Assembly (NCBI GenBank): GCA_002269645.1
Contig: NIVC01000961.1
Coordinates: forward strand, 1 to 33,415
Source of the DNA: Macrostomum lignano
Taxonomy: Eukaryota
DNA: 33,415 nt
Reading direction: 5' to 3'
Shown: positions 3,734 through 26,658 of the stretch, one piece after another
Layout: each line of letters starts with the position of its first letter
How positions within the stretch are numbered: position 1 is the stretch's first letter
Made by a program: the position numbers and the translations under genes
The notes under the pieces: generated by a model
What the model was told of the DNA's origin: nothing
The model's input: only the letters and a program-made list of their open reading frames with translations
The model's database searches: none

Positions 3734-5885
3734 ATGCTGCGCCGGCAGAACCGACTCAGGCGTGAGTTCGTCTACAAGAAGAGCATTGAACAGCGGGACC
3801 AGCAGATTGCCGAGAGGAAACAGAAGCTGCGAGAGACTCTGGCGGCTGGTGGCAGCTCCCAGCTTCCTGACGCCATGAAGCGGCAGGCCCTGCGCCTGCA
3901 TCGGTGAGTTAATGACTCAATTTTGTAATTTAAATACATTCCCGTATTTGGCTTATCAACTGAACTTGAACACCGTCACCAATCTGCTGCACACTCGCTA
4001 AACACACCGTCACCAATCTGCTGCACACTCGCTAAACACACCGTCACCAATCTGCTGCACACTCGCTAAACACACCGTCACCAATCTGCTGCACACTCGC
4101 TAAACACACCGTCACCAATCTGCTGCACACTCGCTAAACACACCGTCACCAATCTGCTGCACACTCGCTAAACACACCGTCACCAATCTGCTGCACACTC
4201 GCTAAACACACCGTCACCAATCTGCTGCACACTCGCTAAACACACCGTCACCAATCTGCTGCCACTCGCTAAACACACCGTCACCAATCTGCTGCACACT
4301 CGCTAAACACACCGTCACCAATCTGCTGCACACTCGCTAAACACACCGTCACCAATCTGCTGCACACTCGCTAAACACACCGTCACCAATCTGCTGCCAC
4401 TCGCTAAACACACCGTCACCAATTTGCAGCCACCTGGACTGGGACGGAGCAGGCGGCGAAGACGCGGACCCGGACCTGGAGCAGAGCAGCCAAGATGACG
4501 AGTACCGCTGGGCCGGCGTAGAAGACCCCAAGCTGGTGCTGACAACGTCGCGCGATCCCAGCTCCAAGTTGAAGCAGTTCGCCAAAGAGCTGCGCTTCCT
4601 ATTCCCAAACTGTCAGCGAGTCAATCGGGGCAATTATCAAACTGCCGATCTGGTCAAAGCCTGCAAAGCCAACGCTGTCACGGATTTGCTGTTGGTTAGC
4701 GAGACACGCGGCGTCCCAGACGGTCTGATTGTGTCCCATCTACCGTTCGGTAAGCGCAAGTCTTGTGCTTCATTTTCCTATTTAAGACGATCCCGATCCC
4801 GGCCCAGCCCAAAAAAGGTCCCAAGATCACTTGCATCGCCCCAGACTCGTAAGTAAAATAGCAGAAAAGTAGTGACTCTCAAGATGTTAAAACGAGATGT
4901 CACAGTACAAAGAGTCGTCTAAGGACCTTTTTAAAGCGTTTTACTGTCGGAGACTCTGAAACGACTCTGGGGCCGTAGAGTCGCATCTTCGGCGTTTTAG
5001 TGGCACTCTTCCGTCGCTAAAAAGTTGCAGAAAAAGCGCTTTAGCGTCACTTTAGAATCGCTTGCACGTCACTTCTGAGACGCTCTGGACGCGTTTCAGT
5101 CAGAGTTACAGCCTACTCAGTGTAGCCTACTGAGTTACGAGTAGTAGAAAGTTAGGCGCCAACATATCGTTTCTTGGACAATTCTTTTGCGGCTCTTACG
5201 ATTTTACAACTTGCGTGACGTGATTGTGACGCAACAGTCGCCTCTCCGCCGCATTAAGCACGTTTGAGTCGTTAAAAAGTCACAAGAGTCGCACAAAAGT
5301 CCATAGACTGATGGTTAGACTTTTTAACAATTCTTGTCCCGATATGGTTTGGGATCCAATATCATTGAGTTCCATTGTTTCCCCGACTGTTAAGTTTTTT
5401 GAGCCAGTGATAATTGAAAAATGCAACAATTCATGCTCTGATCTGTGTTGCCCAATTGCACAGGCCCCACAGCGTTCTTCTCGCTGCACAATGTTCTCAT
5501 GCGTCACGACATGCCCGGGGTGGGCCACCAGCCGCAGGAGCTGCCCCAGCTGGTCATGCACGGCTTTGGCAGTAAGCTGGCCCAACGACTGGCCTCAATT
5601 CTCAAGCACCTGTTCCCGGTGCCCAAGCCCGACTCGCGCCGGGTCTGCTCTTTCACGATTGTTCAGCACGACTATGTAAGCTTCAGGCAGTACAGCTATA
5701 AGACCGTTTCTGGTCAACCTGAGCTCACTGAGCACGGTCCAAGGATGGAGCTGCAGTTGTACCGTATCGTCCAAGGACCGCTAGACGAGGTGGACACAGC
5801 TGAGACCGAGTTCGTTGCTAGGCCTTACATGAATACAGCTAAGAAGAGGCGCCTCATGGCGGCGGCTGAAGAGGCAGCTGCCTGA
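3734..5885 (+). CDS. IMP4: U3 snoRNP protein IMP4 (Brix-domain ribosome biogenesis factor), 3 exons
   Basis: Exons 3734-3903, 4430-4749 and 5464-5885 with GT-AG introns in compatible phases. The joined translation contains [77 protein letters not shown] and GPRMELQLY, collinear with IMP4. AATAAA at 5952-5957. Confidence 0.96.
3971..4423 (+). repeat. 34-bp minisatellite, 13 units plus a partial unit, in IMP4 intron 1
   Basis: Unit CACCGTCACCAATCTGCTGCACACTCGCTAAACA starts at 3971, 4005 ... 4378. Two units are 33 bp. The partial unit at 4411 runs into the acceptor TTGCAG (4424-4429). Confidence 0.98.
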
Positions 5886-6767
5886 TTTAAGACTCCCTGA
5901 TTCGCTGACATTCTTAGCTTATTGTCTTGGTTTCAATGCGCTTTTGCAGTCAATAAACGATTGTTTTTAAATAATGATGACAGCATTTTGTTTGATTGCC
6001 TTCATCTCTCTTTCTTAATTAAAATGTTCATGATACAGCCTTGTTTTTTATTATCATTTTGTGCTTTTAAGCTGTTTTTAGGGTCAGTGCGGTAGTGGCT
6101 CACCAAAGGGTTGTCAATGAGGTCATCTTGATAAGCAAACTGGATGTACTCCGTCCGGCTCCGTCCTAAACGCAGCTCCGTTCCTGCCGACATGGTCAGC
6201 TGGGCTGGCCATAGACTATAGCTAGAATCTTAATGCGCCTCTGTGCAAAGCCTTTCTAGCCGAGAAGGGAGCATTTTATACTACTCGGCTTGGACAGATC
6301 TAGCTAGGGTCGAAAAAAGCAGTTTCAAAGTGCATTTCACTTAATGCTCACTATCTAGATTATGCAGTGTGTACACTCGATATCTAGCAATAGACACTAC
6401 AGTTCACTTTAAAATCTGCAAACAGGCCTTTTTGAAATAGAACGCACTGCACTTCCTTAATACGAGTAGTGCATCATTTTATTGAAAAGTAAATCAGCTA
6501 CAACCATGAAAATTTTGCATACATCGGATTATGAGACTGGCGATGTCATCACAGAGAATGCTGAAACCGAGTCGCTGCATTCCATTGCAGATAAGTATGA
6601 CTTTTTTCACGCATTTTTCGTATGACCAGCGCTGCTGATCATGCTCGGCAGGAGCGGCTACTGTGCAGCTCATAACTTTTCTTTTACCATAGACTCCAAA
6701 AAATTACCATCAGTAAAGGTTGTTGGTCCATGGTCAGCTCTGCTGACTATCCGGCAGCTTACCACGT

Positions 6768-7717
6768 AGCATCCCATGCAGCAGTCTTGCAATCAGAAGC
6801 CAGTCACAGTCCACCACATAGCATCCCATGCAGCAGTCTTGCAATCAGAAGCCAGTCACAGTCCACCACATAGCATCCCATGCAGCAGTCTTGCAATCAG
6901 AAGCCAGTCACAGTCCACCACATAGCATCCCATGCAGCAGTCTTGCAATCAGAAGTCAGTCACAGTCCACCACATAGCATCCCATGCAGCAGTCTTGCAA
7001 TCAGAAGCCAGTCACAGTCCACCACGTAGCATCCCATGCAGCAGTCTTGCAATCAGAAGCCAGTCAGTCACAGTCCACCACGTAGCATCCCATGCAGCAG
7101 TCTTGCAATCAGAAGCCAGTCACAGTCCACCACGTAGCATCCCATGCAGCAGTCTTGCAATCAGAAGCCAGTCACAGTCCACCACGTAGCATCCCATGCA
7201 GCAGTCTTGCAATCAGAAGCCAGTCACAGTCCACCACATAGCATCCCATGCAGCAGTCTTGCAATCAGAAGACAGTCACAGTCCACCACATAGCATCCCA
7301 CGCAGCAGTCTTGCAATCGGTAGCCAGCCAGTCACAGTCCACCACAGCATCCCATGCAGCAGTCTTGCAATCGGTAGCCAGCCAGTCACAGTCCACCACA
7401 TAGCATCCCATGCAGCAGTCTTGCAATCGGTAGCCAGCCAGTCACAGTCCACCACATAGCATCCCATGCAGCAGTCTTGCAATCGGTAGCCAGCCAGTCA
7501 CAGTCCACCACATAGCATCCCATGCAGCAGTCTTGCAATCGGTAGCCAGCCAGTCACAGTCCACCACAGCATCCCATGCAGCAGTCTTGCAATCGGTAGC
7601 CAGCCAGTCACAGTCCACCACATAGCATCCCATGCAGCAGTCTTGCAATCGGTAGCCAGTCAGTCACAGTCCACCACATAGCATCCCATGCAGCAGTCTT
7701 GCAATCGGTAGCCAGTC
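6768..7717 (+). repeat. 52/56-bp minisatellite, 18 units, ending just upstream of the FMO start codon
   Basis: Unit AGCATCCCATGCAGCAGTCTTGCAATCAGAAGCCAGTCACAGTCCACCACAT in the 5' part. The 3' eight units carry CAATCGGTAGCC and are 54-56 bp. Confidence 0.98.
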
Positions 7718-7735: not shown

Positions 7736-9808
7736 ATGCAGCAGTCGCAACAGCAGCCCAAGTCGGTTGCCATCATTGGCGCCGGAGTCTCAGGCCTGGC
7801 GGCGGCAGCCAGTGCCTTGCGCGAGGGCCTGGCGCCAACCGTGTTCGACTCGGCGCCAGGCCTAGGCGGCATGTGGGACCCCGACCTGCGGCCTTGTTGG
7901 CAGTCGATGCGAGTCAACGTGTCCAAGTTCAGCACGGTGCTGTCTGATTATCCATGGCCGCGAGAGGCGCCACTGTTCCTTAGTCAGGTGATTGTATATA
8001 TTTAATACGCCATGTATATCACGGCAGTTTAAGCAGGAGCCAAGGTGTGGTTTGAGCTTACGTCGTTGCCCAAAATGTTCCCCATTAGAGTCAAGTACAA
8101 AAAAGCGCTGTATTTTAACCAAACAGCGTACTTATTTAATAAAATGATTCACCAAATCAGTGTCTAAAAGTTCGGGGTCGGGTCGGGTTTTGGTACCGTG
8201 TTCGGGTTTGAAAAAATGTTCGGGTCGGGGTTTGGGGTTAACCGTCCCGAACACCCCTACTTTTGAGTTGGAACTAAAAAAGGTTTAGCATGGCTTTGTT
8301 TTAACCATTCTATCGCTACCTAGGCACACGTGTTTCTCCATCTCAATTCTAGAGACAATTATTTAAGTAGTTACGAGTATCGTGCTTCGATTGCGTTGTT
8401 TTGCAATCGGTTGTTTTATAACGCAATCCTGTTGGCAGTCGATGCTTGACTTACCAAGAACTCCGCTCCGAATTCCTTAGTTATTACACTTCTGACAGCA
8501 AAGTTTATGCACTTCGTATCATTACGCACTTCGCAGGCTTCGGTGCACGCGTACTTAAGAGAGTACGCCCGAACTCGAATCCCGGCCGACGTTATGCGGT
8601 TTGGAGTTCGCGTCGTCCGGGTTGAGCGCAACCCGAACGGCTCCGGCTGGTTGTTGCAGACGACAGCCGCAGGCGATGCTTCTGCAACCACCCGCCTGTT
8701 CGATTTCGTCATCGTGGCGTCGGGCTTCTTTGCCGAGCCGTCGCTGCCGGCTGGCCTGGAGCAGCGGCTTCATCAAGCTGGGGATGGCCTCGTCAAGGGC
8801 GTCCTGCACAGCAGCCAGTACCGCGGCAACTTCCAGGTGGCCAATCGTCGAGTTGTAGTTGTTGGCAGCTCGCTGAGCGCGTCTGAGATCGCCGCGGACG
8901 CGGCTCTGACAGCTAGCGAGCTGGTGCACATCGCGCCGCACGGATTCTGGGCGTTGCCGCGCATCATCGTGGCTCAAGCCAGCGACAGCTGCCCCGCTGC
9001 ACCAGATTTTGTGCCGCTTGATGTGGCGTTCTACCGGGCTGTTGAGAGGGAAACCATTGGCGAAGTCGTGAGTACAAAGCGATGAAAATTGAAAGTACAG
9101 TATACATGTAAGCATTAGACCAAGACAAACCTACTTACACTTGGTACTGAATATTAAGAAATTAGTTACCGCATAACCTGTTGTTATTCATCGTTATTAG
9201 CACGTAGTGCATCTTTTCGCGATCATTTTTCAACCTGTATAAGGGTTGGAAGTCTGAAAAGAAAACTATAGAGCTCCAGATCAGCCTGAGTACAAGAATA
9301 AGTGTAGTATTCTGACTTGGTCTAAACCAAGCATATAATGTACAATAGTTAGACAGCCAAACGTCCACGGGCGAATTTCGTAGACCCTTAAAGTCGCTTG
9401 CAAGTCACAAGGGCAAATGAAATTTGCATCTTCAGAAAATCCGCACCCCGGGGAACTGGGCCAAGATGTCGGCTTTCTTCGAGTCCGTCTGCGGTGACCG
9501 GCGTCAGCTGTGCTGCGGGTCCGTCACTGCCGACTCGCCCCAGTGGATTACCATCTCGGATCTGTACCACCAGCTGCTGGCCGCCGGCAAGATTCGACTC
9601 GTCTTCGGCCGAGTCGCTAGCCTGAGCTCTGACCGCCTGCGGCTGTTGAACTCCAGCGAGCCAATCGAGCTCGGGCCCGATGATGTCGTCATCCTGTGCA
9701 GCGGCTACCGGCCTCGACTGGACTTTTTGGCGCCTGACGTCCTGGCCGAGCTGCTACAGGCCAACCAAGGCCAAGGTGACTAACTGACTAACTAGCTACT
9801 GTAACTAT

Positions 9809-9906
<98 letters not shown>

Positions 9907-10298
9907 GACTAACTAACTGACTAACTAACTAAGTAACTATCTAACTAACTAACTAACTAACTAACTACTAACTAGGTAAATACTTTGGCTCAGACCTTGT
10001 CGCAACTCTTCAGACGATCGTCAATTAAATGACACCTTCTGCCCGCTGCTGCTGCACCAGTGCATTCTGCACCCGAACTTGCCGGGCCTCGCCTTCGTCG
10101 GGATGTACCGCGGTCCCTTCTGGTCAGTCATCGAACTGCAGGCCCGTCGCGTGGCCGCAGTCTTTTCCGGTTCGGAGCCAGCCCCCAGCCAGGCCGAGAT
10201 GGCCGCTGGGGTGGCCTCGGAGCTGCTGGTTCGGGACCAGCGGCCCAGACCGCAGTTTCCGCACCCAGATCTGGTGGGGATGTGCAACGATTTGTTTG
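7736..10298 (+). CDS. Flavin-containing monooxygenase (FMO-like, class B flavoprotein), exons 1-4
   Basis: Exons 7736-7987, 8537-9067, 9436-9775 and 10014-10298 join in frame through GT-AG sites. Motifs: FAD site IIGAGVSGLAAA, GLGGMW, FDFVIVASGFF, FMO-type GVLHSSQYR, NADPH site VVVVGSSLSASEIA, VILCSGYRP, LHPNLPGLAFVGMYRGPFWSVIELQAR and QFPHPD. Without further splicing the frame stops at 10324. Confidence 0.9.
9115..9325. mobile_element. Degenerate MITE-like element in FMO intron 2
   Basis: TTAGACCAAG (9115-9124) and CTTGGTCTAA (9316-9325) form a perfect 10-bp inverted pair that extends imperfectly inward for about 35 bp. TA lies at both termini. Confidence 0.45.
9778..9974 (+). repeat. (CTAA)n microsatellite with CTGA variants in FMO intron 3
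   Basis: Directly visible. It begins at the donor GTGACT (9776) and fills most of the 238-bp intron. Confidence 0.98.
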
Positions 10299-11054
10299 GT
10301 GAGCGAGACAGTGGGGCAGCATAGGGTTGATTCGGACTCGAGTCTGAGTATAAGTGAGGCCTGTTCTGAGCAGATAAAGTGCTCCGGATTCGAACCAGAA
10401 AACACCGGGCTCGAGGTCCAGGTGTGGCCGCATTTTTGATGCCTGGGGGAAGTGAGTAACTTTCCGGAGCAACAAAATAGAGCAGAAGCTACTGGTAAAG
10501 AAAACCCAAGTGAACTTGATTCCTTAGAGTCTCGAAATAAACGAATTTTGGAAGGTTCTCGCATTTTACTTGCCTGTAAAGGTGAAGACGACTCAGGCAA
10601 CGAGAAGCATTTGCGGTTGCTATCTAACTTCATTAACGGAAGCTCGGCCACATTACTTTGGAGTTCGTGCGCAGGTTCGCTTTCACAAGCTCGGAATGTC
10701 ACATTGTCGAAGAGACTAACTTCATAAGATCTAAAACCAAAAAATTAATAAACTTGAAAGCGATTAGCCATGAAAATTTCTACTATTGTTTCACACTGGC
10801 CCTACAAACCTGATTTTCATTCGATTTATCAAATTTAGTGAGTCATAAATTAATTTATTTCGCCAAAAACCGCTCCCTGAGCCCATTTGGGCGCACAGAC
10901 TTGATGAGAAACAGAGTTTCACAAAAAAGTAGAGGCCAAAAAGTTTTCGACGATTGGATTGCTTGTGCAACGCCTTGAGATTTTTCTTAAGACTCAAAGC
11001 GAAATTGGCGTTGCGTAACAATTGCCTCCTCCCTGGCTGCAGGCTGAGCGTCCA

Positions 11055-12680
11055 AAGCCCTCTGGGACCAACTAACTTAAGTAAGCATTCATTGAGCTTT
11101 CTGGAGATAATGAAGTTCAAGATCGAGCTGAAAAGGATCTGTCCAAGCCAGAAGCAGACCGAGGAACTGTTTACTGGTAATAAATTCTAGCCTCGACCGA
11201 TTGGCATTCTGCATACAGTCAAAGTCCATCGGCGGGGCGGACAACAAAGGATTTCACAGCGCAAACAAAAATAAATGGCGTGTTGACCCTATGTGAATTG
11301 AGCTAGAGTTTTCAGTCCGAGCCATTTCCCTTTACGTTGGGACTTACACGTAGAACTTTGAAATTCCTAGACTGCTGTGAACTGTTTATCGGCGCACCCC
11401 TTCTGAAGCTCACGAGTCGCTATTGTTCTTCAGGTCACGCTGTCTGGCTATCTGGCTAGAACTGCCTAGCGGTAGCCTTGCAGAACGGTTTTCTAGAAAA
11501 GCCTTCTAGAAAAGCCTTCTATATAGAACCGGGACGCTTCTATTAACCTGAGACCATCAAGAAAAAAAGTAAAGTGACAGTCTGAAGCGCAGCTAATTTA
11601 ATTGGATTAAGAAAGCCAAAAAAGTCTCAGAAATCTTCCAACTTTCGCTCGCTCGTACATATGAGTTGTGGGGACTTACTACTGGCGGGGGCACAGACGC
11701 GATTTGGCCGCGTGGCCCATCAATACTATGTCTCCAAGAAGTCCAACAGACCTGGAGAAAGCATGCAAAACTCAGCTTTTGAAGTTTCGAGCTTGTAAAA
11801 CGCCCCCCCCCGTATCCGGAAATAGGCCGGAGGCTTGTCGTGCGATTTTGCGATTGTGTGCCAAACCACAAGGCACAGAATGTATAGGAGCACACGCCTT
11901 AACATGAGAAAGTCAGAGCTGCTGTATGAGCTACTCTACGTGAGCGTGTGCCTACTACGTAAACACTTGCATGCAAAATGCTTCGAAAGCCCCCTCTGCG
12001 ACTTACTAATTTCAGTAAGCATCCATGAAGGTTTTTGAGGCTGGCGAAGTTCAAGATCGAACTAAAATGAATCTGTCCGAGCCAGGAGCTGACGGGAAAA
12101 CAGTTAACTGGCTTTTAAAAGCAAGTCTCAAGCAATTGGCATACTGCATCCAGTCAGAATCGATCGATCGCCTAGGTCAGACTTATGGCGGGGCAAACAG
12201 CCAAGGGTTTCGCACAGCGCAAACAAAAATAAATGGCTTTGACTATGCAAAAGTCGAGTTTTCAGCCTGCTGTGACGAGACACTTCCCTTTATAAGTTGG
12301 GACTTACATGATGAACTTTGAAATTCCCTTGCTTGTGAGTTACTTATCAATGCACCCCTTCTAAAGCTCACGAGTCTATTGTTCTTCGGGTCACGCCGTC
12401 TGGCTAGAACTGCCTTGCAGTAGCTTTTCAGTTATTGTTTTCTTAGAAAGCCCTTCACTCTAATCGAGATATGTCTGCAAGAAAACTTTAGCAGGTCTCT
12501 TTTAAAAAGAATACAAGGTACTTAGTACTCAGTCGAGTAGGTGATTTAAAAAGTCAGTTAAAAGTCGTTTTCTTTGTTTGCTTTTCAAAATGAAAGACCC
12601 ATCACAATATCAATAGTTATATTTCTCCAAAACCAAAACGCTTCTTTTAATCTGAAACCAGCAAGAGAAAGTCAAATGTT
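11055..12680 (+). repeat. Diverged direct duplication (about 11055-11580 versus 11987-12680)
   Basis: Shared collinear blocks include GAAGTTCAAGATCGA, CACAGCGCAAACAAAAATAAATGGC, TTGGGACTTACA, GAACTTTGAAATTCC, AAGCTCACGAGTC, TATTGTTCTTC and CTGGCTAGAACTGCCT, separated by indels. Confidence 0.85.
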
Positions 12681-13602
12681 TTAGAATAATGTGTTGCGGG
12701 GGTGTGCCCCTCTGACGATGATTATGATCGTTGATGTTTCTGTTGAATCAAATAAGTCGGAGGTTCGATTTGTTTCTCTCGATCTCTAACCTTCAACAAG
12801 ATTTTTATTACTAATCAATGTTAGTAGCAATTCCTAATAGGATATTGATCACGCAATTACGCAAATTTGTTAAGCAATTCAGTGAAAATGGAGCCACAGG
12901 CTACTTATCGATATTGTTGCACGAATTGACGTTTGTCCGGATTTATCTCTGTTAAATCAGGATATTAGAGTTCAGGCCGATTGTTGGGGCAAGCTAGCGG
13001 CGCAGTTGAGGAGGCAAAGAGGCGGAGAGCCGAGAACCGGGAAAAACTGGAGAGAGGCTTCATTCTCACTGAACGCTAGTATATATATGATTTCTATAAC
13101 GCATTTCATTGGTGTTCGCTTCACGCAATAGGATCTTTACTGGTGCACAAGCATGTGCTGTACTTTCCTGATAGAAAAACCTTCTGAAGTTCGCATTAGA
13201 CTAAAAAATAACATTGGGCATAACATGCTTAAATTAAGATCACTTCAAAAGGAAATTGACAGTCTGGAATGCAGAAAACTTTTTCGATTAAAAAAGCCAA
13301 AAAACAGTTTTAAAAATTTGCCACCTTACTAAGGAATACGAGCTAAAAACCCAAACAGTTTAAGAAATTTTCTAATATAATATTCATTGCAATGTCAAAA
13401 AATAAATTTCTGAAGAACCAATGCATCTCTCCTAAATGGATCATAAAACTATCAAGCAAATTAAAGTGAGGAAATAGAAACCCAAACGATGAAAGAGGAA
13501 AAGCACAGTATTCAGCTGTTAGCCTAATTGACCGACTCCATAGTCAAGAGCGATTGAACACTCGAAAAATTGTGTCTTGTATCTTCAAACTGCCTCCTTG
13601 CT

Positions 13603-15698
13603 TCACGCAGCCTCACTTGAAGGGCTGCTCAGTCCATTGCGGTTCAGTCTACGAAGGAATTGCTGCCTGCGAGCTGCCAGTTGCCGTAGCCGCCTGTTGT
13701 GCACTCGAATTCGGCACCGGATTGCCGTGGCCCGCTGAGCGAGGCGTCGGCGCTTCGCCGCGATGGCGCGGATTCGACTGACCAGATTGTCGCGTTGAAT
13801 ACGCAAACTGGCGTTGGTAGCGTTGACTCGGGCGCCTCGCTTTATGGCTTTTGATGAGGGCACCTTTGGAAAATGGATAGTTAATCATTTTCGAAAAATG
13901 AAAACTCCGACTTGTAAGCTCCTTATTGACAAGCGAATTCTGTATTGCCAAAGTTCAGCTAGCTAATGCTCAGTGCAACTCGGAAGGCTCCCTCTTTGCA
14001 ACACGTACCGTAAACAAAAAATTAAAAGTATTAGAACCAAAACTGTTGACGCATTTTTTCGACTAAAAATGGTCATCGTCAGAGCAAACCTTCTACTAAA
14101 TAGCATAATATGCTACGAGTATGTCTAGATACGTTTTTGGTTTTCTTGGGTGAAAATCGCGCCATTTCGTCCTGATAGTGGTCGAAATGCATTGATAATG
14201 AGGTGAGCAGTCTGTTTGGTCGGGAACTTTACTTCGGCTACTATTCAGGATCTTGCTTCGACATAAACTTAAAAGATGAGGGACAGAAGCTATCGGTTTG
14301 CAACATTTTAACGACCTCACGCACCTGTTTCTGTTTGGGTGCTTTGGTAAAAACTATGAAGCTTCCCAAAGTCCTCCTCTGTCCTGTCTCCGTTGCGTCA
14401 ATTAGCCGTTCAAGTTGTCGACGTCTTACGCGGAGTCGGAACAGCCTACGCCGCAAACGAAACTGCCGATGCCGGATGTAAATCTTGCGGGTCTTAAGTA
14501 TGTCTATTTTCTTATATTCGTAGCGCAGATGCGATTCAATGTGTTTCATTCGATTGTCGATTCGGTCAGCTAATGTCATGTGGGTTTTAACCTTTGGTTT
14601 CGGAGCAATCTTTAGCAATTCTACGTGTTCACGCAGCCCAAGTCTGGACAAAAGAGTACTGTACCTTGTTACTGCCTTGTGCATTTCTTTGTCATATTTT
14701 TTCTGATTAATCAACTCATGAGTCTTCATGGCGTTGAGCCTTTTCTGCCCAATGTTTTTCTTACTCTGTCGCAGTCGCGCAAGTTTTGTCTCGATATTGG
14801 CTACTTTGCGTCGAGAAAGCAGCATAGCTCTTATAAAATGCCTGAAATCAGCCATATAGGTATAAATCCGAGTAGCAAAGCGCGTCACATCCGCTCGGCT
14901 AGTCACGTCCAGGTGCCGACGACTGGAAATCGGATCGTCTTTTATGCTAAACCTGGCGAGCCGTCGCAAGTCGTATGGCTTCCATCTCTCTATGAATTGT
15001 TCCATGGGCCAGTATCGCTCATTGCTATCTGCCAGCTGAAGACGAACCCGCTTTTTGAGCAAAGCGATTCGTCTCCGAAAAATTTGCCGCCTTTTCGACA
15101 GTCGCCTAATGCGACGGCGCAGCGCTGCCTGTTGAATAAGCAGAATGCGCTTGGACGGCTGCTGGGAAGTCCGAACCTCAGTCTTTGTGATATTGGCAGA
15201 CTTACTCTCACCCAGCTTCATGCGAGCTCTCTCTGTCTGAGCAATGCTACTATGTTTAGCCAGAGCTGCCATTCGAATTTTGAGCTGTTTCAACCGTTCG
15301 TCCACGACTTGTTCGTGTCTTTTAATTCGATTGATCCGGAATCTGAAAAGCAGGGATCGCCTCATGTCGCGCAACCACGCTCTCTCCCCTTCTCGGAAGC
15401 GTTTGTTCCACTCGGTGACGGATTGGCTTCTGATGTGTAGCTTTCTTGGCTTGATGACCCCGTTTTGCTTGCGATAGCTGCTAGCTGCTTTGGTGCCTTT
15501 CAGCTGCTTCTCCAGCATATTTCTGAGCTGCGTTATCTGTCCCAGAAGATTCCTGTTTTGCTCAGAGGCTTGAGATCGGGCTTTCCTGAATTCCCGAATC
15601 AGCACTCGAAACTGATTGTTTGCCTGCACTCCATTCGACTCTGGAAAGCAGTGGTGCGGATGGCCATCTAGGATTAATTTCGTATTTTTGTGCCTCAT
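13603..15698 (-). CDS. Unknown ~544-aa highly basic (Arg/Lys-rich) predicted coiled-coil protein, nested antisense in FMO intron 4
   Basis: Open frame of about 1.5 kb (14241-15755) with first ATG at 15698. A phase-0 donor CAG|GTGCGT at 14325/14324 joins a phase-0 acceptor (ATTAAC...TATCCATTTTCCAAAG|) at 13864/13863, adding an 86-aa exon of the same Arg-rich character. About 127 of 504 residues of the long ORF are R or K (hand count). No recognisable family. Confidence 0.75.
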
Positions 15699-16346
15699 AT
15701 CTATACCGTCTGAAGAGTTGATTCGGGAGGTGATCAGTCTCCCGAAAACTCCCACTTCCAGACACTTAAGCCTGGGAACAAAATAAAGTGATCACTTACT
15801 TTTGCGGGCTCCTCTTCTGTGTAGTGCAGGTTCTCCGAGCTCGTTTCTTCTAATCTTCTTCTTCTCCGGAGGAATCTTCTTGAAGTCTCGAATCGGCCGA
15901 ATGAGAGCGTGACGATCAAATCAGGCGACGTCGCAGTATTTCTCGAATGCAAATCAATATAGGCCTTAAGCTCAGTAATCAATATCAACGATGCGCCCTT
16001 GTAATAAAATCAACTTTCTGTAATAATCACGAGGACCTCCAAGAGGGGCGTCTTCTTCTAGATCTAACGGAATCGGAGTCGTGTGCTCCTATCGGTTAAT
16101 CTAGGATAACCAAAATCAATCAATCGATAATCCTCTAAGGGTATCGGAATCGGTCCGCCGATCCTATCCAATCCCTTAGGAAAATGGGAGGCCTCAAATT
16201 CAATGAACTCAGTCCAAACGACTGGATAGTAGCGGCCGGCAATAAATCGCTCTCAAAATCAATAACAAAGGCTCGAGCAACGGCTCACCAATTGGTTTAT
16301 CTCTCTCTCTCAGAGATGTAGCCTCGCTTAGCTGTTCCAGCAAGCT

Positions 16347-16402
16347 CCAAGATCTTTAGAGGCTGCTCCGAGTCCCAAGATCTTTTGAGGCTGCTCCGAG
16401 TC
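16347..16402. repeat. 28-bp tandem duplication just downstream of the proximal minus-strand TATA box
   Basis: CCAAGATCTTTAGAGGCTGCTCCGAGTC (16347-16374) and CCAAGATCTTTTGAGGCTGCTCCGAGTC (16375-16402), one mismatch. Confidence 0.9.
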
Positions 16403-16430
16403 TGAGATTTTTAGCTCGGATTTTGGCTTG

Positions 16431-16438
16431 TATTTATA
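16431..16438 (-). promoter_or_regulatory. Candidate proximal TATA box (TATAAATA) of the nested gene
   Basis: TATAAATA on the minus strand. There is no ATG on that strand in the roughly 730 nt down to ATG 15698. Plausible UTR donors lie at 16288 (G|GTGAGC) and 15799 (A|GTAAGT). Confidence 0.5.
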
Positions 16439-16823
16439 GGAAACCTTCTTGAAGAACAGATTATTTTTAGTAGGTGACAGTTTAGCGCTTTGGAAATTTG
16501 ACCCCTATGGAATACATTAGGTTTGAGCGTCAATACCATATTCGGAGTTCTAAATTTAAGTGTTGCAAAAGGTGGTCATTTGTTGCTTTCGTGGTCTTTA
16601 AAAATAGAGTGTGACAATTTGCAGTTTTTACAACATTCAAGTTTTTCGCATTTTTATGTTTCTACTTACAGTAGTCTGCTTGTAATGCCTCTGGAGATCT
16701 CTACACGTCCGTATATAATCAATAGCAATTTTTTTATGAGACTGAGATGACTTAAATGGGTCCAGTCGCAGTAAAAATCGAAAAAGGATATATTGCGAAA
16801 GTTCAAGCAAGTTGAAAATTTAC

Positions 16824-16932
16824 CAGAACGTTTGCCGTGTTTAATGGCTGCTCCGCTGCAAAACTGGAAAATCTCTCCGAAAATCAGCAAGCCAGCGAAA
16901 ATCAATAGATGAGCTGCTCTAATCTGGACCAT
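16824..16932 (-). CDS. Signal-peptide-encoding exon (MVQIRAAHLLIFAGLLIFGEIFQFCSGAAIKHGKRS)
   Basis: ATG at 16932, hydrophobic core LLIFAGLLIF, small-residue cleavage region CSG/AA, then a GKR site. Phase-1 donor G|GTAAAT at 16824/16823. The downstream partner exon is uncertain. Confidence 0.55.
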
Positions 16933-17080
16933 CTCAACTCGTTTTGTTTAGCAGCTCAATACGCAAAGTAAATGTAGAGTCAATTCTTCCACTTTCTTCA
17001 GTTTTTCCACTTTTGCACACTGCTGGGAAATTAAAGCTAAAGAGTCTGAGTTTGGGCAGTTCTACTTTATTCGTTATGGC

Positions 17081-17137
17081 TATTTATACACGGCGAGGAT
17101 CGGGTGGAAGCGCAGGGGGTGTAATTCATTTCATTGG
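17081..17137 (-). promoter_or_regulatory. Candidate distal promoter: CCAAT box plus TATAAATA
   Basis: Minus-strand CCAAT at 17137-17133 and TATAAATA at 17088-17081, about 150 nt upstream of ATG 16932. Confidence 0.55.
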
Positions 17138-17462
17138 TTGACTGAGTTGATTAAAATACTAATACTGCTGGAAGGGTAGCTGCTCGTAGCTTTATCCAGT
17201 TTTAAATATTGACATATTTTGGAGTTTGAAATTTTATCTTTACAAATTTCGCACATACATGCATATGGGTTTAAGTTACGCTACGAGCGTATCTCCTTGT
17301 ACGCTCGTAATTTGATTTCTGAATACGTGTAGGTTGTGAAAACATTTTCAGAGCGTTTACACAGCCTTTATTTTTTATTTTTCCAACTGAATTTACTTAC
17401 AAATACTTTAATTTCCACCCTCTATCATCCCCTCTGACCAAACTTTCCTCACCATCTATAAG

Positions 17463-18019
17463 GCAGTCAGCCCGCCTTCAGCAGCCACCTGCTGGCCAAC
17501 GCGTACCGCCGCGGCGGCCCAGACCCCGACGTGTCGGCGGAGCTGGCCGCCGTCTGCGCCGACCCGGACGGCAGCTTAGCGGCCTCAGCCATCGCTCGGG
17601 CGCTGCACTCGACTCGCTGGCAGTTCTGTCGACGTCGCCAATCAGACGGTACGGTTACAGAGGCCGAGAAAGAGGAAGGCACGGCGGAGTTTTTCGGCTC
17701 TCTGGACGATGATCCGGGACGCGGACTGACGCTGCAGTACCGAGAAAGTCGTCCCGCTGGCCAGTGGCTCTTCCAGTTAGCATTCAAGAAGCTGCAACCA
17801 GCCAGCACGCTGAGCCTGTTGAACAAGCCGGAGGGACTGCCACTCTGTCTCCGACTGAGCAGATCGACCGAGGGCTGGCTGGCCGAGGCCTTTGGCTGGC
17901 GGTTCTGCTTCGCTTTCCGGGGAATACAGCTGGAGAGGTTCTCGCTGCTAAGGGAAGAGGCTGAGGGCTACTGCAGGCTAGCTGAGTACCAGCCAATGGT
18001 GTTACTGAGGAATATCTGA
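17463..18019 (+). CDS. Terminal exon 5 of the FMO gene, DUF6314-like C-terminal domain
   Basis: GC-rich 185-codon exon with no ATG near its 5' end. It is preceded by CTGAC, a long pyrimidine tract and AG (17461-17462). Its phase 1 matches the FMO donor at 10298. The five exons total 1965 nt, or 655 codons. AATAAA at 18134-18139. The domain assignment comes from recalled motifs only. Confidence 0.7.
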
Positions 18020-19602: not shown

Positions 19603-22600
19603 ATGGTGAGTTGTCTGTCTTCTTTTGAAATGATACAATCTGATGTTTTTTTTCAACTTAAGCTTAACAGTACCGTTGTAAATTATGTGGGCCAGGCCTC
19701 AGGCCAGGAATTTTGTCCCTATCTATAGTAGGCCTAGGCTATTATGATCAAGTCGTCAAGAGGTTGTTTTTGAATATGGCATTCTGGCAGCTGGCACAAC
19801 AAGCATTAAGTTTCGGCAGCAAAAAATGATCATGTTGGGGAGTAGAGATCTATGACATGTTAAGATAGGCCTAGGTCTGCAAAAAAGCTTCAGTGTAAAT
19901 TTGGGTTTTTTAAGATTTCTCTCTTCTCTCCTCCTTTATCTCTATCATCTTCTCTTGTCTCTTCCCTCTTTGTTCCTCTCTCCTCTTGTCTCTGCCCTCT
20001 TCTCCTCTTTCCTTTCTCTTGTCTTTGCTCTCTCAGTTCTCTTCTTTTATCTTTGCTCTTTACTCTCTCTTCTCTCTCCTCTCTTCTCACTCTACTTTCC
20101 TCTCTCTTAACACTTCCCTCTTCTCTCCTCTTTCCTCTCTCCTATCTACTCTTTCCTGTCTCATCTCTTCTCTCTCATCTCAAATTTATACTCCTATTTA
20201 TTATTTCTCTTCTTTTCTCTTTTCTATCAATTCTCTTGTCTTTTCTCTATTCAGCTATTCTCTTTACTTTCTCTTCTTACTCTCTCATTTGTCATGTTAT
20301 CTCTATGCCCTCTTATCTCTCTTTTCTTCCTTCCTTTACTCTTTCCCCTCTTCTCTTTTCTCTTTTTCTCTCTCCCTTTTCTCTCCTCTCTTGCTATTCT
20401 CTTCTTCCTCTCCCATTTCTTCACAATTTTCTTGTGATTTAAATTCACTATTTAAATTTAAACTTATATAATTATAAAATAAATTAAACTTAATGTGAAA
20501 ATTTCCATTGTGTGACTAATTTAGTAGGATTGTATTGCATTGAATTACTTTTTTATAAATCTTGCTTTTACAAACCATGTTGCATTGCCTTGATTTGCCA
20601 ATTGCCACCCACTATTAAACTGCTACAAAGTTTGCCTATACAGAGGGCCACACTCAGGAAGGTGTACATTATGGCGGAAAATTCCGGCGCACATCCATGA
20701 AAAATATGCGCAAAGTGGTGCACACGGCGCACAACAAAGGCTTAGCAAAAGTTTTTAGCACATAATGGTGCATAGCAAAACCTGATTAGAAAAATTTAAC
20801 TCACAATGAGTCACCTAAATGTATAATCTGCATATGCAGTGCATAAAATATGCTTTAAGATTACATTTTTCTAAGCATATCAATAAAAATTGTTGTTTCT
20901 TGGTAAGTGAAACAAATAATAAAATTCAAAATGGGATTTTAACGTAAAGTTAAAGCTATTTTTTTTGAGAATTTTCTACGTGAGCTAAAAAAAGCAAAAG
21001 TTTTGAGTTAAAAAAAGCCTACATGAGATACAAAAATTTATCCGTTTTTTAGTTTTGTTTTAATTGGACTTTTACCGAGTTTTTAGTGCTACGGCGCATT
21101 AGTTAGCGATGTATTTGTCAATAAATGAATGTACACCTCGGCGCACAAATTCATATTTTAGCTTCGTGCACAGCGCACACCAAAAATACGCTAAAATATG
21201 TTCCCGCGCACACGTGACACCTTCCTGAGTGTGGACAGAGGGCAGGGGTTAGAATTTTTCACTAAACTGTCATGGCTTAATGTAGCACATGCTATCTATA
21301 AATAAAGTTATTCTAAAACATTGTCATATTGCCATATAAAGAATTGTTAAGATATTATAACCTAGAGAAGAATTGCTAAGAAGTCTGCTTATAAGAGGTC
21401 AAATCATAGGATAAATTACTAAAATATCAAGACTAAGAGGTCAGAGGCTGTGTTGTCTTTAATTATTCAATTCTTTCTTGGCTTCCCAATATTGCATTTT
21501 GCAATTAAATTAAGTTTGAATTTACCTAGTTTATACATTTTGTCATGTCTACTATTATTAGTACATTATTTATATCTAACAAATGATAAGGTGTTTAAAA
21601 GTGAGAAAAAAGAATAGCCTTACAGTCTGATTTTATGCTAGTAGCATATATTGTTTATTGTAGCAACTATACTAACATGTATCCTACCTACCTATGGCAG
21701 CTACCAATATGCCTATAGGAAACAGCTGCTCCAATGGCTAAAACCATTGAAATATAAAGATGTAAAAAAAGAAGCCATTGTTTTGCTAAAAAAATTGAGA
21801 CAAGGTCAAAAAGCTTTCAACCCCTGTACCCTGCATTGAAAAGTGAAAAATTCATCTTAACTTCAGCCTCTACTATCCAACCGCAGCGTGGGAATCTTGT
21901 TGAAATTGCTAAAAGCATACTAGCAAACCTAAACCTATTGTAAACCTGTATTGTACTGTATTGCAAACCTATTCTACATTGGATATTAATGATGAAAGCT
22001 TTAACACTTTGCCCTACAATATCATGGGGGAACTTTTGCTACTAGATGGACTGAATTATAAAACATTTCCAATATGTACAGCACCTGTCGAATCGCAGAC
22101 TGCGCAACTCAACCAACCACTCTATGGCACCAACCGCACAACTAGGTGAACTTTACTGTTGGCCAAATTCGCTCCATGATGGACAACAAGCGGAACATCC
22201 GCAACATGTCCGTCATCGCCCACGTCGACCACGGCAAGTCGACGCTGACTGACTCGCTGCTGTCCAAGGCCGGCATCATCGCCTCGGCCAGGGCTGGCGA
22301 GACCAGGTTCACGGACACGCGAAAGGATGAGCAGGAGCGGTGCATCACCATCAAGTCGACTGCCGTGAGCATGTACTACGAGCTGAGTGAGCCTGACGTG
22401 AATTTTGTCAAGACCCTGCAGGAGGTCTCGAAGCGCAGCGACGGAACTGACGAGTGTGGCTTCCTGATCAACCTCATCGACTCGCCCGGCCACGTGGATT
22501 TCAGCTCGGAGGTAAATTGGCTTTTTCATTTTCCTTACACCTCGTTGGACCACGAAACCTTATTACTTTAACTCCTGCAGGTGACGGCCGCTCTGCGTGT

Positions 22601-25600
22601 CACCGATGGCGCCCTGGTCGTCGTGGACTGCAACTCCGGCGTGTGCGTGCAGACGGAGACGGTGCTTCGGCAGGCCATCGCCGAGCGCATCAAGCCAGTG
22701 CTGTTCATGAACAAAATGGACTGCTCGCTGCTGACGCTCAAGAAAGGCAAGGAGGATCTGTACCAGCAGTTCCAGCGAGTCGTGGAGAACATCAACGTGA
22801 TCATCGCCCAGTTCGGCGAGGAGGGCGGCCCCATGGGCAACATCTTCGTGTCGCCGGAAAAGGGCACCGTCGGCTTCGGCTCCGGCCTGCACGCTTGGGC
22901 CTTCACGCTGAAGCAGTTCGCCGAGATCTACGCCTCCAAGTTCAAGATCGAACCGGAGAAGCTGATGAAGCGACTGTGGGGCGACAACTTCTACAACACG
23001 GAGACGAGGAAGTGGGTGAAGACTCAGGAGAGCGACAAGTGCGTCCGGGGCTTCATCCAGTTCGTGCTGAACCCCATCTACCAGGCAAGTGTTGCTTCAG
23101 TACACCTTTCATATTATTGTTAATGGCTTGACAGTATGATCACTTTATACTGAACCTGATGATCTAGCTTTTCTGGCGGAGATTACTTTGTATTATTTAT
23201 TATCGAAAGTTTTCATTTTCTCGCTCCGTCTGTAAAACCTGCGCATGATGACCTTATACTGCCCCAGGCTGAGAGAAATCTTACTTAATGAGGATTCAGT
23301 CTGTCTGATTCGCAGCAGGTAGTTATTGTTAGTTTGAGCTTTGCGAATACTTTTTTATTGCATGGTTTCGGTCAGTTCTCTGGGATTGCTTCTCCGCGAT
23401 AGCGAAAATTCACTTTGTGCCATCTGCTCCACAGATGTTCGAAGTAGTGATGGACAAGCCTATCGAGGAGGGCCTGAAGCTGGCCGAAAAGCTCGACATC
23501 AAGCTGGACGCTGAGGAGCGCGAGCTGAGCGGCAAGCCGCTGCTCAAGGTGATGATGCGCAAGTGGCTCCCAGCTGGCGACACCCTGCTGCAGATGATTG
23601 CCATCCACCTGCCGTCTCCCGTGACCTCTCAGCGCTACCGCATGGAGCTGCTGTACGAGGGACCCCATGATGACGAGGCCGCCATCGGCATCAAGACATG
23701 CGATCCGAAGGCGCCGCTCATGATGTACATCTCGAAGATGGTGCCGACCTCCGATAAGGGCCGATTCTACGCCTTCGGTCGGGTGTTCTCCGGAGTTGTG
23801 AGCGCCACCAAGGTGCGAATCATGGGCCCCAACTTCGCGCCGGGCAAAAAGGATGACCTGTTTGAGAAGAGCATCCAGCGCACCATCCTCATGATGGGCC
23901 GCTACACCGAGCCTATCGAGGATGTACCTTGCGGCAACATCTGCGGTCTCGTCGGCGTCGACCAGTTCCTGGTGAAGACCGGCACCATCACCACCTACGC
24001 CGCTGCGCACAACATGCGCGTCATGAAGTTCAGCGTGTCGCCCGTCGTTCGCGTCGCCGTCGACTGCAAGAATCCGTCCGACCTGCCGAAGCTGGTCGAG
24101 GGTCTGAAGCGCCTGGCCAAGTCCGACCCCATGGTGCAGATCTACAACGAGGAGTCCGGCGAGCACATCGTTGCTGGCGCTGGCGAGCTGCACCTGGAGA
24201 TCTGTCTGAAAGATCTGGAGGAGGATCACGCCCAGATCCCGATCAAGACCGGTGATCCCGTTGTGTCTTACCGCGAGACTGTCACTAACGAGAGCAACCA
24301 GGTTAGTGGCCTAGATCTTCTGTGTAGTAGTTAGACCATTAGCTACTGACTGTCAGAATTAGCTACTGACTGTCAGCATTAGCTACTGAGTACATGAGCA
24401 TTAGCTACTGAGTACATGAGCATTAGCTACTGAGTACATGGGCATTAGCTACTGAGTACATAAGCATTAGCTACTGAGTACATGGGCATTGGCTACTGAG
24501 TACATGAGCATTGGCTACTGAGAACATAGGCATTGGCTACTGAGTACATGAGCATTGGCTACTGAGAACATAGGCATTGGCTACTGAGTACATGAGCATT
24601 GGCTACTGAGAACAAAGGCATTGGCTACTGAGTACATGAGCATTAGCTACTGAGTACATGAGCATTAGCTACTGAGTACATGAGCATTAGCTACTGAGTA
24701 CATGAGCATTAGCTACTGAGTACATGAGCATTTACTACTGAGAACCTAGGCATTGAATACTAAGTCAGCATATCAATAACCGTCGTCTCTTGACCCCTCT
24801 AGACCGTGCTGTCAAAGTCGCCCAACAAGCACAACCGGCTGTACATGAAGGCCCGCCCTCTGGACGAAGATCTCTGCAAGGACATTGACGATGGCAAGAT
24901 CGCGCCCCGCCAGGACGCGAAGGACCGCGGCCGCATCCTTGCCGACACCTACAGCTGGGACGTGACCGAGGCTCGCAAGATCTGGTGCTTCGGGCCGGAC
25001 ACCAACGGTCCCAACCTGGTTGTTGACGTCACCAAAGGTGTGCAGTACCTGGCTGAGATCAAGGACAGCGTTGTAGCCGCTTTCCAGTGGGCCACCAAGG
25101 AGGGCGTTTTGTGCGACGAGAACATGCGCGGCTGCCGCTTTGACATCTGCGACGTGACGCTGCACACCGACGCTATCCATCGCGGCGGCGGCCAGATCAT
25201 CCCGACTGCTCGGCGCTGCTTCTACGCCGCCGTGCTGACCGCGGAGCCGGCCCTGCTAGAGCCGGTGTACCTGTGCGAGATCCAGTGCCCGGAGAACGCT
25301 GTTGGCGGCATCTACGGTGTGCTGAACCGTCGGCGCGGTGTTGTGTTCTCCGAGGAGCAGGTGAGACTCTTCACACTTGTTAATGGATCTTCTCGTTAAT
25401 CTTCATATCATCTAATTCGTTGTGAGCTTGGCAAAGTGACTGGTCGTTTTTTTTGGACAATCTGAAGTTTCCTGCTTGAGCAGTTTCGAGCTTGTGAAGT
25501 ATCGAGCTTGAGCAGTTTCGAGCTTGTGAAGTATCGAGCTTGAGCAGTTTCGAGCTTTTGAAGTATCAAGCTTGAGCAGTTTCGAGCTTGTGAAGTATCG

Positions 25601-25984
25601 AGCTTGAGCAGTTTCGAGCTTGTGAAGTATCGAGCTTTTGAAACGCCCCTCATAGACTGAGAGTGCAATTTTTTGTTAGTGGCGTCCTATTCCGATTTCC
25701 AATCGATCCCCTCCACAACCTCCCTCTGCCAGGTGTCCGGCACCCCGATGTTCATCGTGAAGGCCCACCTGCCAGTTAACGAGAGCTTCGGCTTTACCTC
25801 GGACCTGCGCCAGGCCACAGGCGGCCAGGCCTTCCCGCAGTGCGTGTTCGACCACTGGCAGGTGATGCCTGGCGACCCCCTGACCGCCGGCACCAAGCCC
25901 AGCCAGATCGTGCTGGACACCCGCAAGCGCAAGGGCCTGCAGGAGGGCATCCCGCCGCTGGACCGCTTCCTGGACAAGCTGTGA
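19603..25984 (+). CDS. EEF2: Eukaryotic translation elongation factor 2, 6 exons, about 849 aa
   Basis: Exons 19603-19605 (ATG only, inferred), 22146-22511, 22581-23084, 23435-24301, 24803-25360 and 25733-25984. Motifs [47 protein letters not shown], the diphthamide loop [15 protein letters not shown], and a C-terminus ending FLDKL. AATAAA at 26408-26413. Confidence 0.98.
19917..20430 (+). repeat. Degenerate CT-rich low-complexity tract in EEF2 intron 1
   Basis: About 510 bp that is almost entirely C and T on the + strand. The overlapping L/S/F-rich and R/K/E-rich ORFs are compositional artefacts. Confidence 0.95.
20648..21234. mobile_element. MITE, 587 bp, perfect 18-bp TIRs, 8-bp TSD, in EEF2 intron 1
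   Basis: TIR CCACACTCAGGAAGGTGT (20648-20665) and its reverse complement (21217-21234). ACAGAGGG is duplicated at 20640-20647 and 21235-21242. GCGCACA motifs recur near both ends. AT-rich core with no meaningful ORF. Confidence 0.9.
24337..24772 (+). repeat. 22-bp minisatellite (about 20 units) in EEF2 intron 4
   Basis: Unit GCATTAGCTACTGAGTACATGA with variants. The first two units are about 20 bp. Confidence 0.97.
25474..25639 (+). repeat. 32-bp tandem repeat (5 units, 16+16 dimer) in EEF2 intron 5
   Basis: GCTTGAGCAGTTTCGA plus GCTTGTGAAGTATCGA, with units at 25474, 25506, 25538, 25570 and 25602. Confidence 0.97.
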
Positions 25985-26658
25985 GCCGGCAGGATCAGCG
26001 AATGCGATCTGACAGGCTGACTGACCAAACTCTTGCTTTATCCCGATGCGCGGACCCTCTGTTCTTGATAATTTGCCTAACAATCTAAGTTAATTATTGT
26101 ACTATTGTGCTCTGTTCTGTGCGGATGCGAGCGGCAGAGCAGCTCCGGGTGCGGGTCAGCCCTAGTAAACAGATTGTTAGACTCCATCATTTTGCATCCC
26201 AAAATATGCAATCCACCTTAGCTGCTCTGCCCTCCAGTTCCGATAAAAGATAATTATTATACTAAACTAGATAACTAACAGCCGCTGCAAGATTCTCCCG
26301 CTGCCGTGTTTTTCATTTTCGACACGTTCGTGTTACGCTTTTAGACTCTCCAACCAACCTCTGGCTCGCTGAAATTTATTGACTCAAATTATTTCTATAA
26401 TTATGAAAATAAATATATAAAAAACCCACGCGCAGTGAAGTGAAGCTCGATTGCTTGGAATTTTGGACTAAAATCATTTCAAGCTTGTGGCCTGACGCGA
26501 GTGTGCGAGTAGCTGTGTGCTCTCTACTGTCTGTCTGGCAGCGCGCGTGAATTTAAATTGATTAACAAAAAATATGAAAAATTATTGACGCAATTTTTAG
26601 TTCGATGTTGAGTTTCTACAGATTTTTTTATTTTCATTCTACCATTGCATGCATCTCC

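Follow-up and report, generated by a model that had tools for sequence, protein, structure and literature searches.

The window analysed here comprises the whole of contig NIVC01000961.1 (33,415 bp) from the Macrostomum lignano assembly GCA_002269645.1. Its minus strand carries a gene for an extremely basic protein, nested antisense in the last intron of a plus-strand flavin-containing monooxygenase (FMO) gene, and this nested gene, recognised in a preliminary description of the sequence, is the subject of the present analysis; the features of the locus are collected in Table 1. As originally called, the main exon spans 15698..14325 (1374 nucleotides (nt), 458 codons) and is followed by a second exon of 86 codons, the two being joined in phase 0 into a product of 544 amino acids (aa). 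Both exons and their junction were reproduced: the donor reads CAG/GTGCGT and the acceptor TTTTCCAAAG/G, the 14325/13863 junction is common to three independent database gene models (P0001, P0002 and P0003), and it coincides with the only intron of a paralogue described below. The Arg-rich helix with the highest conservation is encoded by the short downstream exon, as is the only conserved Cys of the mature protein. On the minus strand of the host intron the stop-codon frequency is 0.049, at which 504 stop-free codons have a probability of ~1e-11; the open reading frame (ORF) is therefore not a product of chance, and the locus is a genuine protein-coding gene. The divergent codon usage reported for it was also borne out, with a GC content at third codon positions (GC3) of 0.54 versus 0.71-0.86 in the FMO and elongation factor 2 (EF2) exons. 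A 271-aa plus-strand ORF (14625-15440), which is Ser/Leu/Pro-rich and has no matches, lies antisense to the main exon and resembles a shadow ORF. Rfam and tRNA scans over the whole window detected no RNA genes.

The nesting is established by FMO exons on both sides of the gene. Upstream, the FMO-like family of Pfam (PF00743) is matched with E = 2.8e-12 by exon 1, which contains the FAD-site motif IIGAGVSG, and with E = 1e-11 by exon 2, and FMOs in the PDB match the host gene down to E = 3e-30. Downstream, Pfam gave no match on the last host exon (17463-18019); in a BLASTP comparison this exon matched the FMO homologue P0005 with E = 2e-6 and 74% query coverage. In both P0005 and a further FMO homologue, P0007, the FMO core is followed by a C-terminal extension, annotated as PF19834. 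A consensus donor (TTG/GTGAGC) at 10299 and an acceptor at 17462 delimit an intron of 7.2 kb (10299-17462), and the flanking exons join in frame at 10298/17463 without stops. Given the FMO exons on both sides and the in-frame join, the minus-strand gene lies, as had been proposed, in the FMO intron, and it is contained there as a whole. The GenBank annotation of contig part 3603-25518 does not call the host gene, and its UniProt model A0A1I8J6U0 (P0004) is a fragment, in which both the N-terminus and the last exon are missing. Two repetitive features accompany the host gene. A plus-strand tandem array, whose repeat period is ~52 nt and becomes 56 nt near the 3' end, occupies positions 6730-7650, just upstream of the FMO start codon at 7736; it shows up as a succession of almost identical ORFs of 49 aa each (MQQSCNQKPVTVHHIASHAAVLQSEASHSPP...), and it coincides with strongly negative GC skew. 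Within the FMO intron, upstream of the 3' end of the nested gene, there are two ~430-bp copies (11058-11483 versus 11992-12431) that are 76-100% identical and ~950 bp apart, which may represent a local duplication or two short repeat-element copies.

The gene itself is not new, having already been deposited in GenBank as PAA74279.1 (hypothetical protein BOX15_Mlig010351g1, 484 aa), a model that starts at the internal Met at 15518. UniProt holds two fragments in the same 90% cluster, namely A0A1I8H792 (P0002, 422 aa), automatically named CHAD domain-containing, and A0A1I8HE24 (P0003, 576 aa), automatically named WW domain-containing. Neither name withstood scrutiny: at E <= 10 there was no Pfam match to the CHAD domain (PF05235) for the 544-, 561- and 576-aa versions of the protein or for the paralogue, and none to the WW domain (PF00397). 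Both names seem to have arisen when profiles were matched automatically to a sequence of biased composition. Full-text literature searches for Mlig010351, for the paralogue's locus name Mlig032363 and for the protein accessions returned no mention, nor did paper supplements searched for Mlig010351 and, in part, also for Mlig032363. The three records agree on the 14325/13863 junction but differ at their 5' ends.

Table 1. Features of the nested gene and of its FMO host in the window
Feature	Position	Strand	Evidence or remark
Host FMO exons 1-4	7736-7990, 8525-9067, 9436-9780, 10013-10298	+	Pfam and PDB matches
Host FMO last exon	17463..18019	+	aligns to the C-terminal extension of P0005
TATA box 1 (TATAAATA), candidate upstream promoter	17083..17088	-	pattern search
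Initiator-like 9-mer CTCAGACTC, inferred transcription start 1	17042..17050	-	38 nt downstream of TATA box 1
Exon 1 (candidate signal-peptide exon)	16824..16932	-	ATG, 36 codons and 1 nt; donor G/GTAAAT (16824/16823)
TATA box 2 (TATAAATA), candidate internal promoter; the TATA box of the preliminary description	16433..16438	-	TATAAA
Initiator-like 9-mer CTCAGACTC, inferred transcription start 2	16398..16406	-	32 nt downstream of TATA box 2
ATG-free stretch	15699..16516	-	819 nt from the A of ATG 16517 to the A of ATG 15698
Intron 1	15641..16823	-	GT..AG, 1183 nt; houses the candidate second promoter and the ATG-free leader
Small intron in the leader	15710..15799	-	GT-AG; AAAA/GTAAGT ... CTCTTCAG/A; used by P0003
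AUG of the preliminary description	15698	-	58 nt upstream of the exon 2 acceptor
Exon 2 (core coding exon)	14325..15640	-	tblastn of P0011 to 15635..14325, E = 7e-70
Intron 2	13864..14324	-	GT..AG, 461 nt, phase 0
Exon 3	13603..13863	-	261 nt; 86 codons and stop TGA at 13605-13603

A candidate signal-peptide exon and two candidate promoters

At a distance of 1.2 kb upstream of the main exon and on the same strand, an ORF from 16932 reads MVQIRAAHLLIFAGLLIFGEIFQFCSG/AAIKHGKRS, and the exon that it defines (exon 1) encodes the signal-peptide-like sequence MVQIRAAHLLIFAGLLIFGEIFQFCSGAAIKHGKRS. The start of this exon is the first ATG after the upstream TATA box, and its end is a GT donor from which splicing to exon 2 would keep the frame. 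The exon has a counterpart in the paralogue P0011, which begins MNIIISAVHLCWLPGLLIFGLTSEAEA/VRASYSNGF..., an apparent hydrophobic signal peptide running straight into the conserved region of the protein. The pattern IxAxHLxxxxGLLIFG is common to exon 1 and to the N-terminus of P0011; their Smith-Waterman score is 44, versus 26.7 +/- 3.4 for shuffled sequences, of which 1 in 1000 reached 44, in a test that covered 2.4 kb of upstream sequence in three frames. The mean Kyte-Doolittle hydrophobicity of the core is 2.11 over 15 aa in exon 1 versus 2.02 in P0011, and the -3/-1 rule, fitted by eye, gives AEA/V in P0011 and CSG/A in the window copy. P0011 has no intron at the position of intron 1, and removal of that intron from the window copy (acceptor CTGCTTTCCAG/AG, 15641/15640) restores the frame and yields a 561-aa protein colinear with P0011.

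The database models bear on the same acceptor. P0002 opens with SNGVQ, whose first codon is the first complete one downstream of the 15641/15640 acceptor, and the first in-frame AUG beyond that acceptor is the one used as start by GenBank, at 15518; together these facts suggest that there are transcripts whose mapped 5' end lies at this acceptor. Since the residues encoded between 15640 and 15518 are conserved in P0011, the GenBank start is placed too far downstream. The 19 residues that follow AUG 15698 (MRHKNTKLILDGHPHHCFP), on the other side of the acceptor, have no counterpart in P0011. The small intron of the leader parts an 87-nt segment (15886-15800) from the main exon, and the candidate acceptors at 15886, 15709 and 15640 are all in phase with exon 1. 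We infer that the full protein, of 561 aa, is encoded by three coding exons (16932-16824, 15640-14325 and 13863-13603) that a hydrophobic signal peptide probably forms its N-terminus, and that its transcription would start from the TATA/initiator promoter at ~17088-17042. Two of the acceptors, at 15641 and 15710, also match the published spliced leader (SL) trans-splice acceptor motif [T/C]TNCAG (PMC8629364), so that SL trans-splicing is possible by motif. The SL-terminal ATG would be out of frame at both acceptors, however, and trans-splicing alone therefore cannot provide the start codon.

Each of the two TATA boxes is followed by an identical initiator-like 9-mer, CTCAGACTC, and the 115 nt from the first initiator to ATG 16932 are free of ATG. 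The combined pattern TATAAA-N20-40-CAGAC occurs in three copies in the window, versus 0.37 expected, and the third copy is the promoter of the EF2 gene, just upstream of that gene; because the pattern is shared by both nested-gene sites and EF2, both sites look like working core promoters. A 28-nt tandem duplication (GACTCGGAGCAGCCTCTAAAGATCTTGG; 16347-16402, minus strand, two copies, 96% matches) begins at the initiator 9-mer of the second site.

The TATA box at 16438-16433 had been described as preceding a long ATG-free leader, and this feature was confirmed and extended to 819 nt, the longest ATG-free gap on the minus strand. Of the 64 trinucleotides, ATG alone is missing from the stretch, where a first-order Markov model predicts 11.3 copies (P ~1e-5), and none of 20,000 mononucleotide shuffles was ATG-free. 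Since nothing would keep an intron free of ATG, the second promoter and its 819-nt leader are probably functional as well and would give rise to a form without signal peptide that starts at AUG 15698. The gene would then yield one form with a signal peptide and one without. The two-exon gene model starting at this AUG is thus retained in part: its leader and TATA box are real, and it describes at best one of two forms, having missed the signal-peptide exon at 16932-16824.

Paralogue, protein composition and predicted structure

An exhaustive phmmer search against 1.84 billion representatives matched only two proteins, P0002 and P0011, both from M. lignano, in agreement with the earlier suggestion of a lineage-specific gene. 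P0002 is 98% identical to the window protein and is probably the second copy expected in a recently duplicated genome, or an allele. P0011 (PAA58034.1 / A0A267EAW3, BOX15_Mlig032363g1) is a protein of 582 aa encoded on another contig; it is matched with E = 8e-77 and is 44-46% identical to the window protein from end to end. As far as databases show, the gene is restricted to Macrostomum and belongs to a very small family. A word-indexed protein search returned only the locus's own M. lignano models and missed the 46%-identical paralogue even when the paralogue was included in the query profile, probably because its 8000 scored candidates were filled by Arg-rich low-complexity proteins. The negatives of such a search are accordingly unreliable for Arg-rich low-complexity queries, and it is the exhaustive phmmer result that counts.

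The divergence between the two paralogues is of the coding type. Identity at codon positions 1, 2 and 3 is 62%, 67% and 42%, respectively; dN (nonsynonymous divergence) is 0.48-0.59 and dS (synonymous divergence) 0.86-1.58, with dN/dS of ~0.3-0.7, and 134 of the 242 identical residues are encoded by different codons. The similarity is not compositional, as identity at positions other than R and K still amounts to 37% and there are conserved motifs of non-basic character, e.g., KDDPxSSRR and STLxSRLGL. The only intron of the paralogue (11510-12066 of its locus, L002) lies at the homologous position and in the same phase as intron 2 of the window gene (KKKQQ/ATMKG versus KQKQ/VPSSK). Within +/-10 kb of the paralogue there is no FMO gene, so the nesting is not tied to the function of the family. 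The paralogue has its own TATAAAG ~90 nt before its ATG, and a (GTA)n microsatellite of ~260 bp (L002 9400-9660) is located 340 bp upstream of its start codon.

Both proteins are strongly basic. In the 544-aa product R accounts for 17.8%, K for 8.8% and the two together for 26.7% of residues, close to the quarter estimated previously, versus 7.5% for D+E. The 561-aa model contains 17.5% Arg and 2.9% Gly and has an isoelectric point (pI) of 11.9 and a net charge of +105; P0011 has a pI of 12 and a net charge of +126. The mature protein contains a single cysteine, which lies in the last helix and is conserved in the comparison between window protein and paralogue (AIRCRIRV versus AARCRVRR). The helical, heptad-like character noted before is upheld by the hydrophobic power at period 3.5, which is 5 standard deviations above that of shuffled sequences, and by a single-sequence AlphaFold2 model with six long helices of 34-72 residues and block pLDDT values of up to 94. 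Three Arg-rich segments had been described as a recurring element. All three are present in the translation; they are not demonstrable as mutual repeats, since in shuffle tests 81, 17 and 265 of 500 shuffles reached the observed scores, and their likeness is not significant beyond composition.

The protein remains unclassified, as initially stated. Pfam gave no match for its 544-, 561- and 576-aa versions or for P0011, even at E <= 10, and thus none to the protamine-like and transposon ORF1 families that had been proposed for comparison. No PDB chain was matched in sequence, either by single-sequence or by profile search, and Foldseek comparison of the model with the PDB gave no match at E <= 0.001. 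The best Foldseek matches were filamentous helical proteins of axonemal doublet microtubules (E of 3.7e-3 or worse, TM-scores of 0.2-0.27, root-mean-square deviation of ~40 A, 12-13% identity); for a predicted structure of this kind, they are the generic outcome of any long-helix model with a low pTM.

Other features of the window

Three further genes or gene-like ORFs were noted outside the FMO locus. A Brix-domain gene (306 aa) occupies 3725-5885 on the minus strand and is called in GenBank. The EF2 gene (849 aa) lies at ~22146-26000 on the plus strand, and its TATAAA-N-CAGAC core promoter at 22057-22100. Near the end of the contig, a plus-strand ORF at 32406-33008 resembles a major-facilitator or SV2-type transporter (...GAPILGAISDRYGRW...). 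CT-rich low-complexity tracts at 19900-20500 and 26000-27500 show extreme GC and AT skew, with GC skew down to -0.41 and -0.58, and one of these tracts explains the other very long ATG-free gap of the window, which is on the plus strand.

Interpretation and comparison with known systems

We read the locus as a nested three-exon gene for a polycationic coiled-coil protein that is restricted to this lineage and belongs to the secretory pathway, and would put the probability of this reading, which was reached by sequence analysis, at roughly 0.55. In the mechanism that we propose, a specialised gland cell or granule-forming cell would take the signal-bearing form into its secretory pathway, where the long amphipathic, heptad-patterned helices of the protein would pair into coiled coils that the single conserved C-terminal cysteine may cross-link by disulphide. 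Through its ~100 excess positive charges the protein could bind polyanions (e.g., sulphated glycans, acidic protein partners or nucleic acids) and condense them, and it could thus be a polycation that packs a secretion or gives it cohesion, e.g., seminal fluid, an adhesive or another gland product. The form without signal peptide, if made, would meet nucleic acids instead. Sperm-nuclear, sperm-accessory and gland or adhesive functions had all been considered in the preliminary description; the candidate signal peptide favours the gland or secreted options and speaks against the sperm-nuclear one, at least for the signal-bearing form. More speculative, and in our view doubtful, is the full picture of a Macrostomum-restricted Arg-rich coiled-coil family with signal peptides and net charges of about +105 to +126, in which two tandem promoters would supply secreted or granule forms and intracellular forms, and which would represent a new helical polycation condensing or gluing polyanionic material in flatworm secretion.

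Several observations weigh against the main reading. The 5' joins 16824/15640, 16824/15709 and 15800/15709 were deduced from sequence and not from transcripts, and the similarity of exon 1 to the paralogue comprises 16 aligned residues. In GenBank the model begins only at 15518, and in UniProt the 15641 acceptor goes unused in model P0003, which reads through it. In the window copy the hydrophobic segment is followed by the basic KHGKRS, so a signal anchor instead of a cleaved signal is possible. The AlphaFold2 model was built from a single sequence, with a pTM of 0.33 and no defined tertiary fold. Finally, the ATG-free stretch speaks for the reality of the form without signal peptide, which may even be the main one.

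The last of these points leads to an alternative in which transcription starts only from the TATA box at 16438 and translation at AUG 15698, so that the product would be an intracellular nucleic-acid-binding polycation, e.g., a sperm chromatin or ribonucleoprotein (RNP) protein, and the upstream signal-peptide ORF would be either a small gene in its own right or a remnant that a 1.2-kb insertion has severed from the rest. We consider this possible, though rather less credible than a secreted product. It would account for the ATG-free stretch of 819 nt that ends exactly at an in-frame AUG, for the TATA/initiator pair at 16438/16406 and for the small intron of the ATG-free leader in P0003; the paralogue's lack of intron 1 makes the 1183 nt resemble an insertion, and the extreme basic charge suits nucleic-acid binding. 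On the other hand, the 19 residues that this start would add (MRHKNTKLILDGHPHHCFP) lack a counterpart in the paralogue, whereas exon 1 has one, and exon 1 is intact, preceded by a promoter-like pair of its own and ending in a consensus donor of the correct phase. P0011, moreover, necessarily has the signal-peptide-like N-terminus, its next in-frame Met after the start being residue 112. This putative signal peptide of the family speaks against a cytoskeletal location and hence against a filament-forming cytoskeletal or axonemal coiled-coil protein, e.g., a microtubule-inner-protein-like part of sperm or cilia. This is an improbable reading, prompted by the axonemal doublet microtubule filament proteins among the best Foldseek matches; those matches do not reach E <= 0.001 and are generic for a low-pTM long-helix model, and no PDB chain is similar in sequence.

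Least credible of all are two further readings. A retroelement gag or LINE (long interspersed element) ORF1-like origin could be suspected from a basic, coiled-coil-like protein in a repeat-rich genome with a GC3 below that of its neighbours. Yet none of the three protein versions nor the paralogue has a Pfam match at E <= 10, and no match was obtained for the few neighbouring ORFs of at least 60 aa (12500-17500) that were run against Pfam; there are no long terminal repeats (LTRs), terminal inverted repeats (TIRs) or other copies around the gene, phmmer finds only two divergent loci in the proteome, and a spliceosomal intron is conserved between the paralogues. That the gene might have no function at all, whether as a pseudogene in decay or as an ORF that arose by chance on a non-coding antisense transcript, is just as hard to believe: dN/dS is admittedly fairly high, up to ~0.7 by one method, but the frame has stayed intact over 561 codons here and 582 in the paralogue despite a dS of ~1 or more, third codon positions diverge far more than first and second ones, and the non-basic motifs KDDPxSSRR and STLxSRLGL are conserved. 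Of the outcomes that had been named in advance as telling against the gene, those open to sequence comparison did not materialise, as there are no frame disruptions, dN/dS relative to the paralogue is below 1, and Pfam shows no gag/ORF1 match.

The analysis adds to the deposited record a gene model with a candidate signal-peptide exon, evidence for two promoters, a paralogue with selection on its reading frame and the confirmation of the host FMO intron. Three inconsistent database models can be corrected, in that the start of PAA74279.1 is too far downstream and the 'CHAD' and 'WW' names are spurious, and the omission of the host FMO gene from the GenBank annotation of contig part 3603-25518 is exposed. 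M. lignano is a model for research on bioadhesion, seminal fluid and sexual conflict, and many of its reproduction-related genes are fast-evolving orphans. If the secretory reading is true, the family is a candidate component of Macrostomum gland secretion. A helical protein of ~560 residues that combines ~100 excess positive charges with a signal peptide is unusual and could be useful as a natural polycation. Otherwise the gene is unexceptional, both in its taxonomic restriction and in its nested position, nested orphan genes being common.

Genes nested antisense in host introns are common in animals, and the present case, a complete gene with its own candidate promoter on the opposite strand of a host intron, shows nothing unusual in this respect. 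The closest known relative, PAA58034.1, resembles the window gene in the position and phase of its intron, its pI of 12, its single conserved cysteine and its Arg-rich helices; it differs in having the signal peptide continuous with the main exon and no FMO nearby, and is itself uncharacterised. LINE-1 ORF1p and retroviral Gag share the basic coiled-coil character of the window protein, which, unlike them, has no match to RRM/CTD or capsid domains, has no reverse-transcriptase ORF among the few neighbouring ORFs run against Pfam, is of low copy number in the protein search and is encoded with a conserved spliceosomal intron. CHAD domains are basic helical bundles that bind polyphosphate, and their likeness to the window protein is loose and one of composition only. 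Sperm nuclear basic proteins, or protamines, are small, much richer in Arg, nuclear and devoid of signal peptides. The window protein shares with protamine-like proteins a high arginine content and, presumably, charge-based polyanion binding; assignment to the protamine type was rejected in view of its length of 561 aa, its 17.5% Arg, its heptad-patterned helices, the N-terminal hydrophobic signal of the family and the lack of a Pfam match. Among gland products the obvious comparison is Mlig-ap1, a Macrostomum adhesive protein that is thousands of residues long. Mlig-ap1 is secreted and strongly positive, with Lys/Arg-rich 'GRK' regions, and its basic parts are Gly-rich low-complexity repeats flanking a core of protein- and carbohydrate-binding domains (EGF, lectin and vWD-type) (PMC8621496). 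The window protein differs from it in being helical, with Leu/Ile heptad spacing, no known domain and no sequence similarity, and an adhesive protein of the Mlig-ap1 type is ruled out by a Gly content of 2.9% and by the lack of domains in Pfam. What Mlig-ap1 does show is that polycationic gland products occur in M. lignano.

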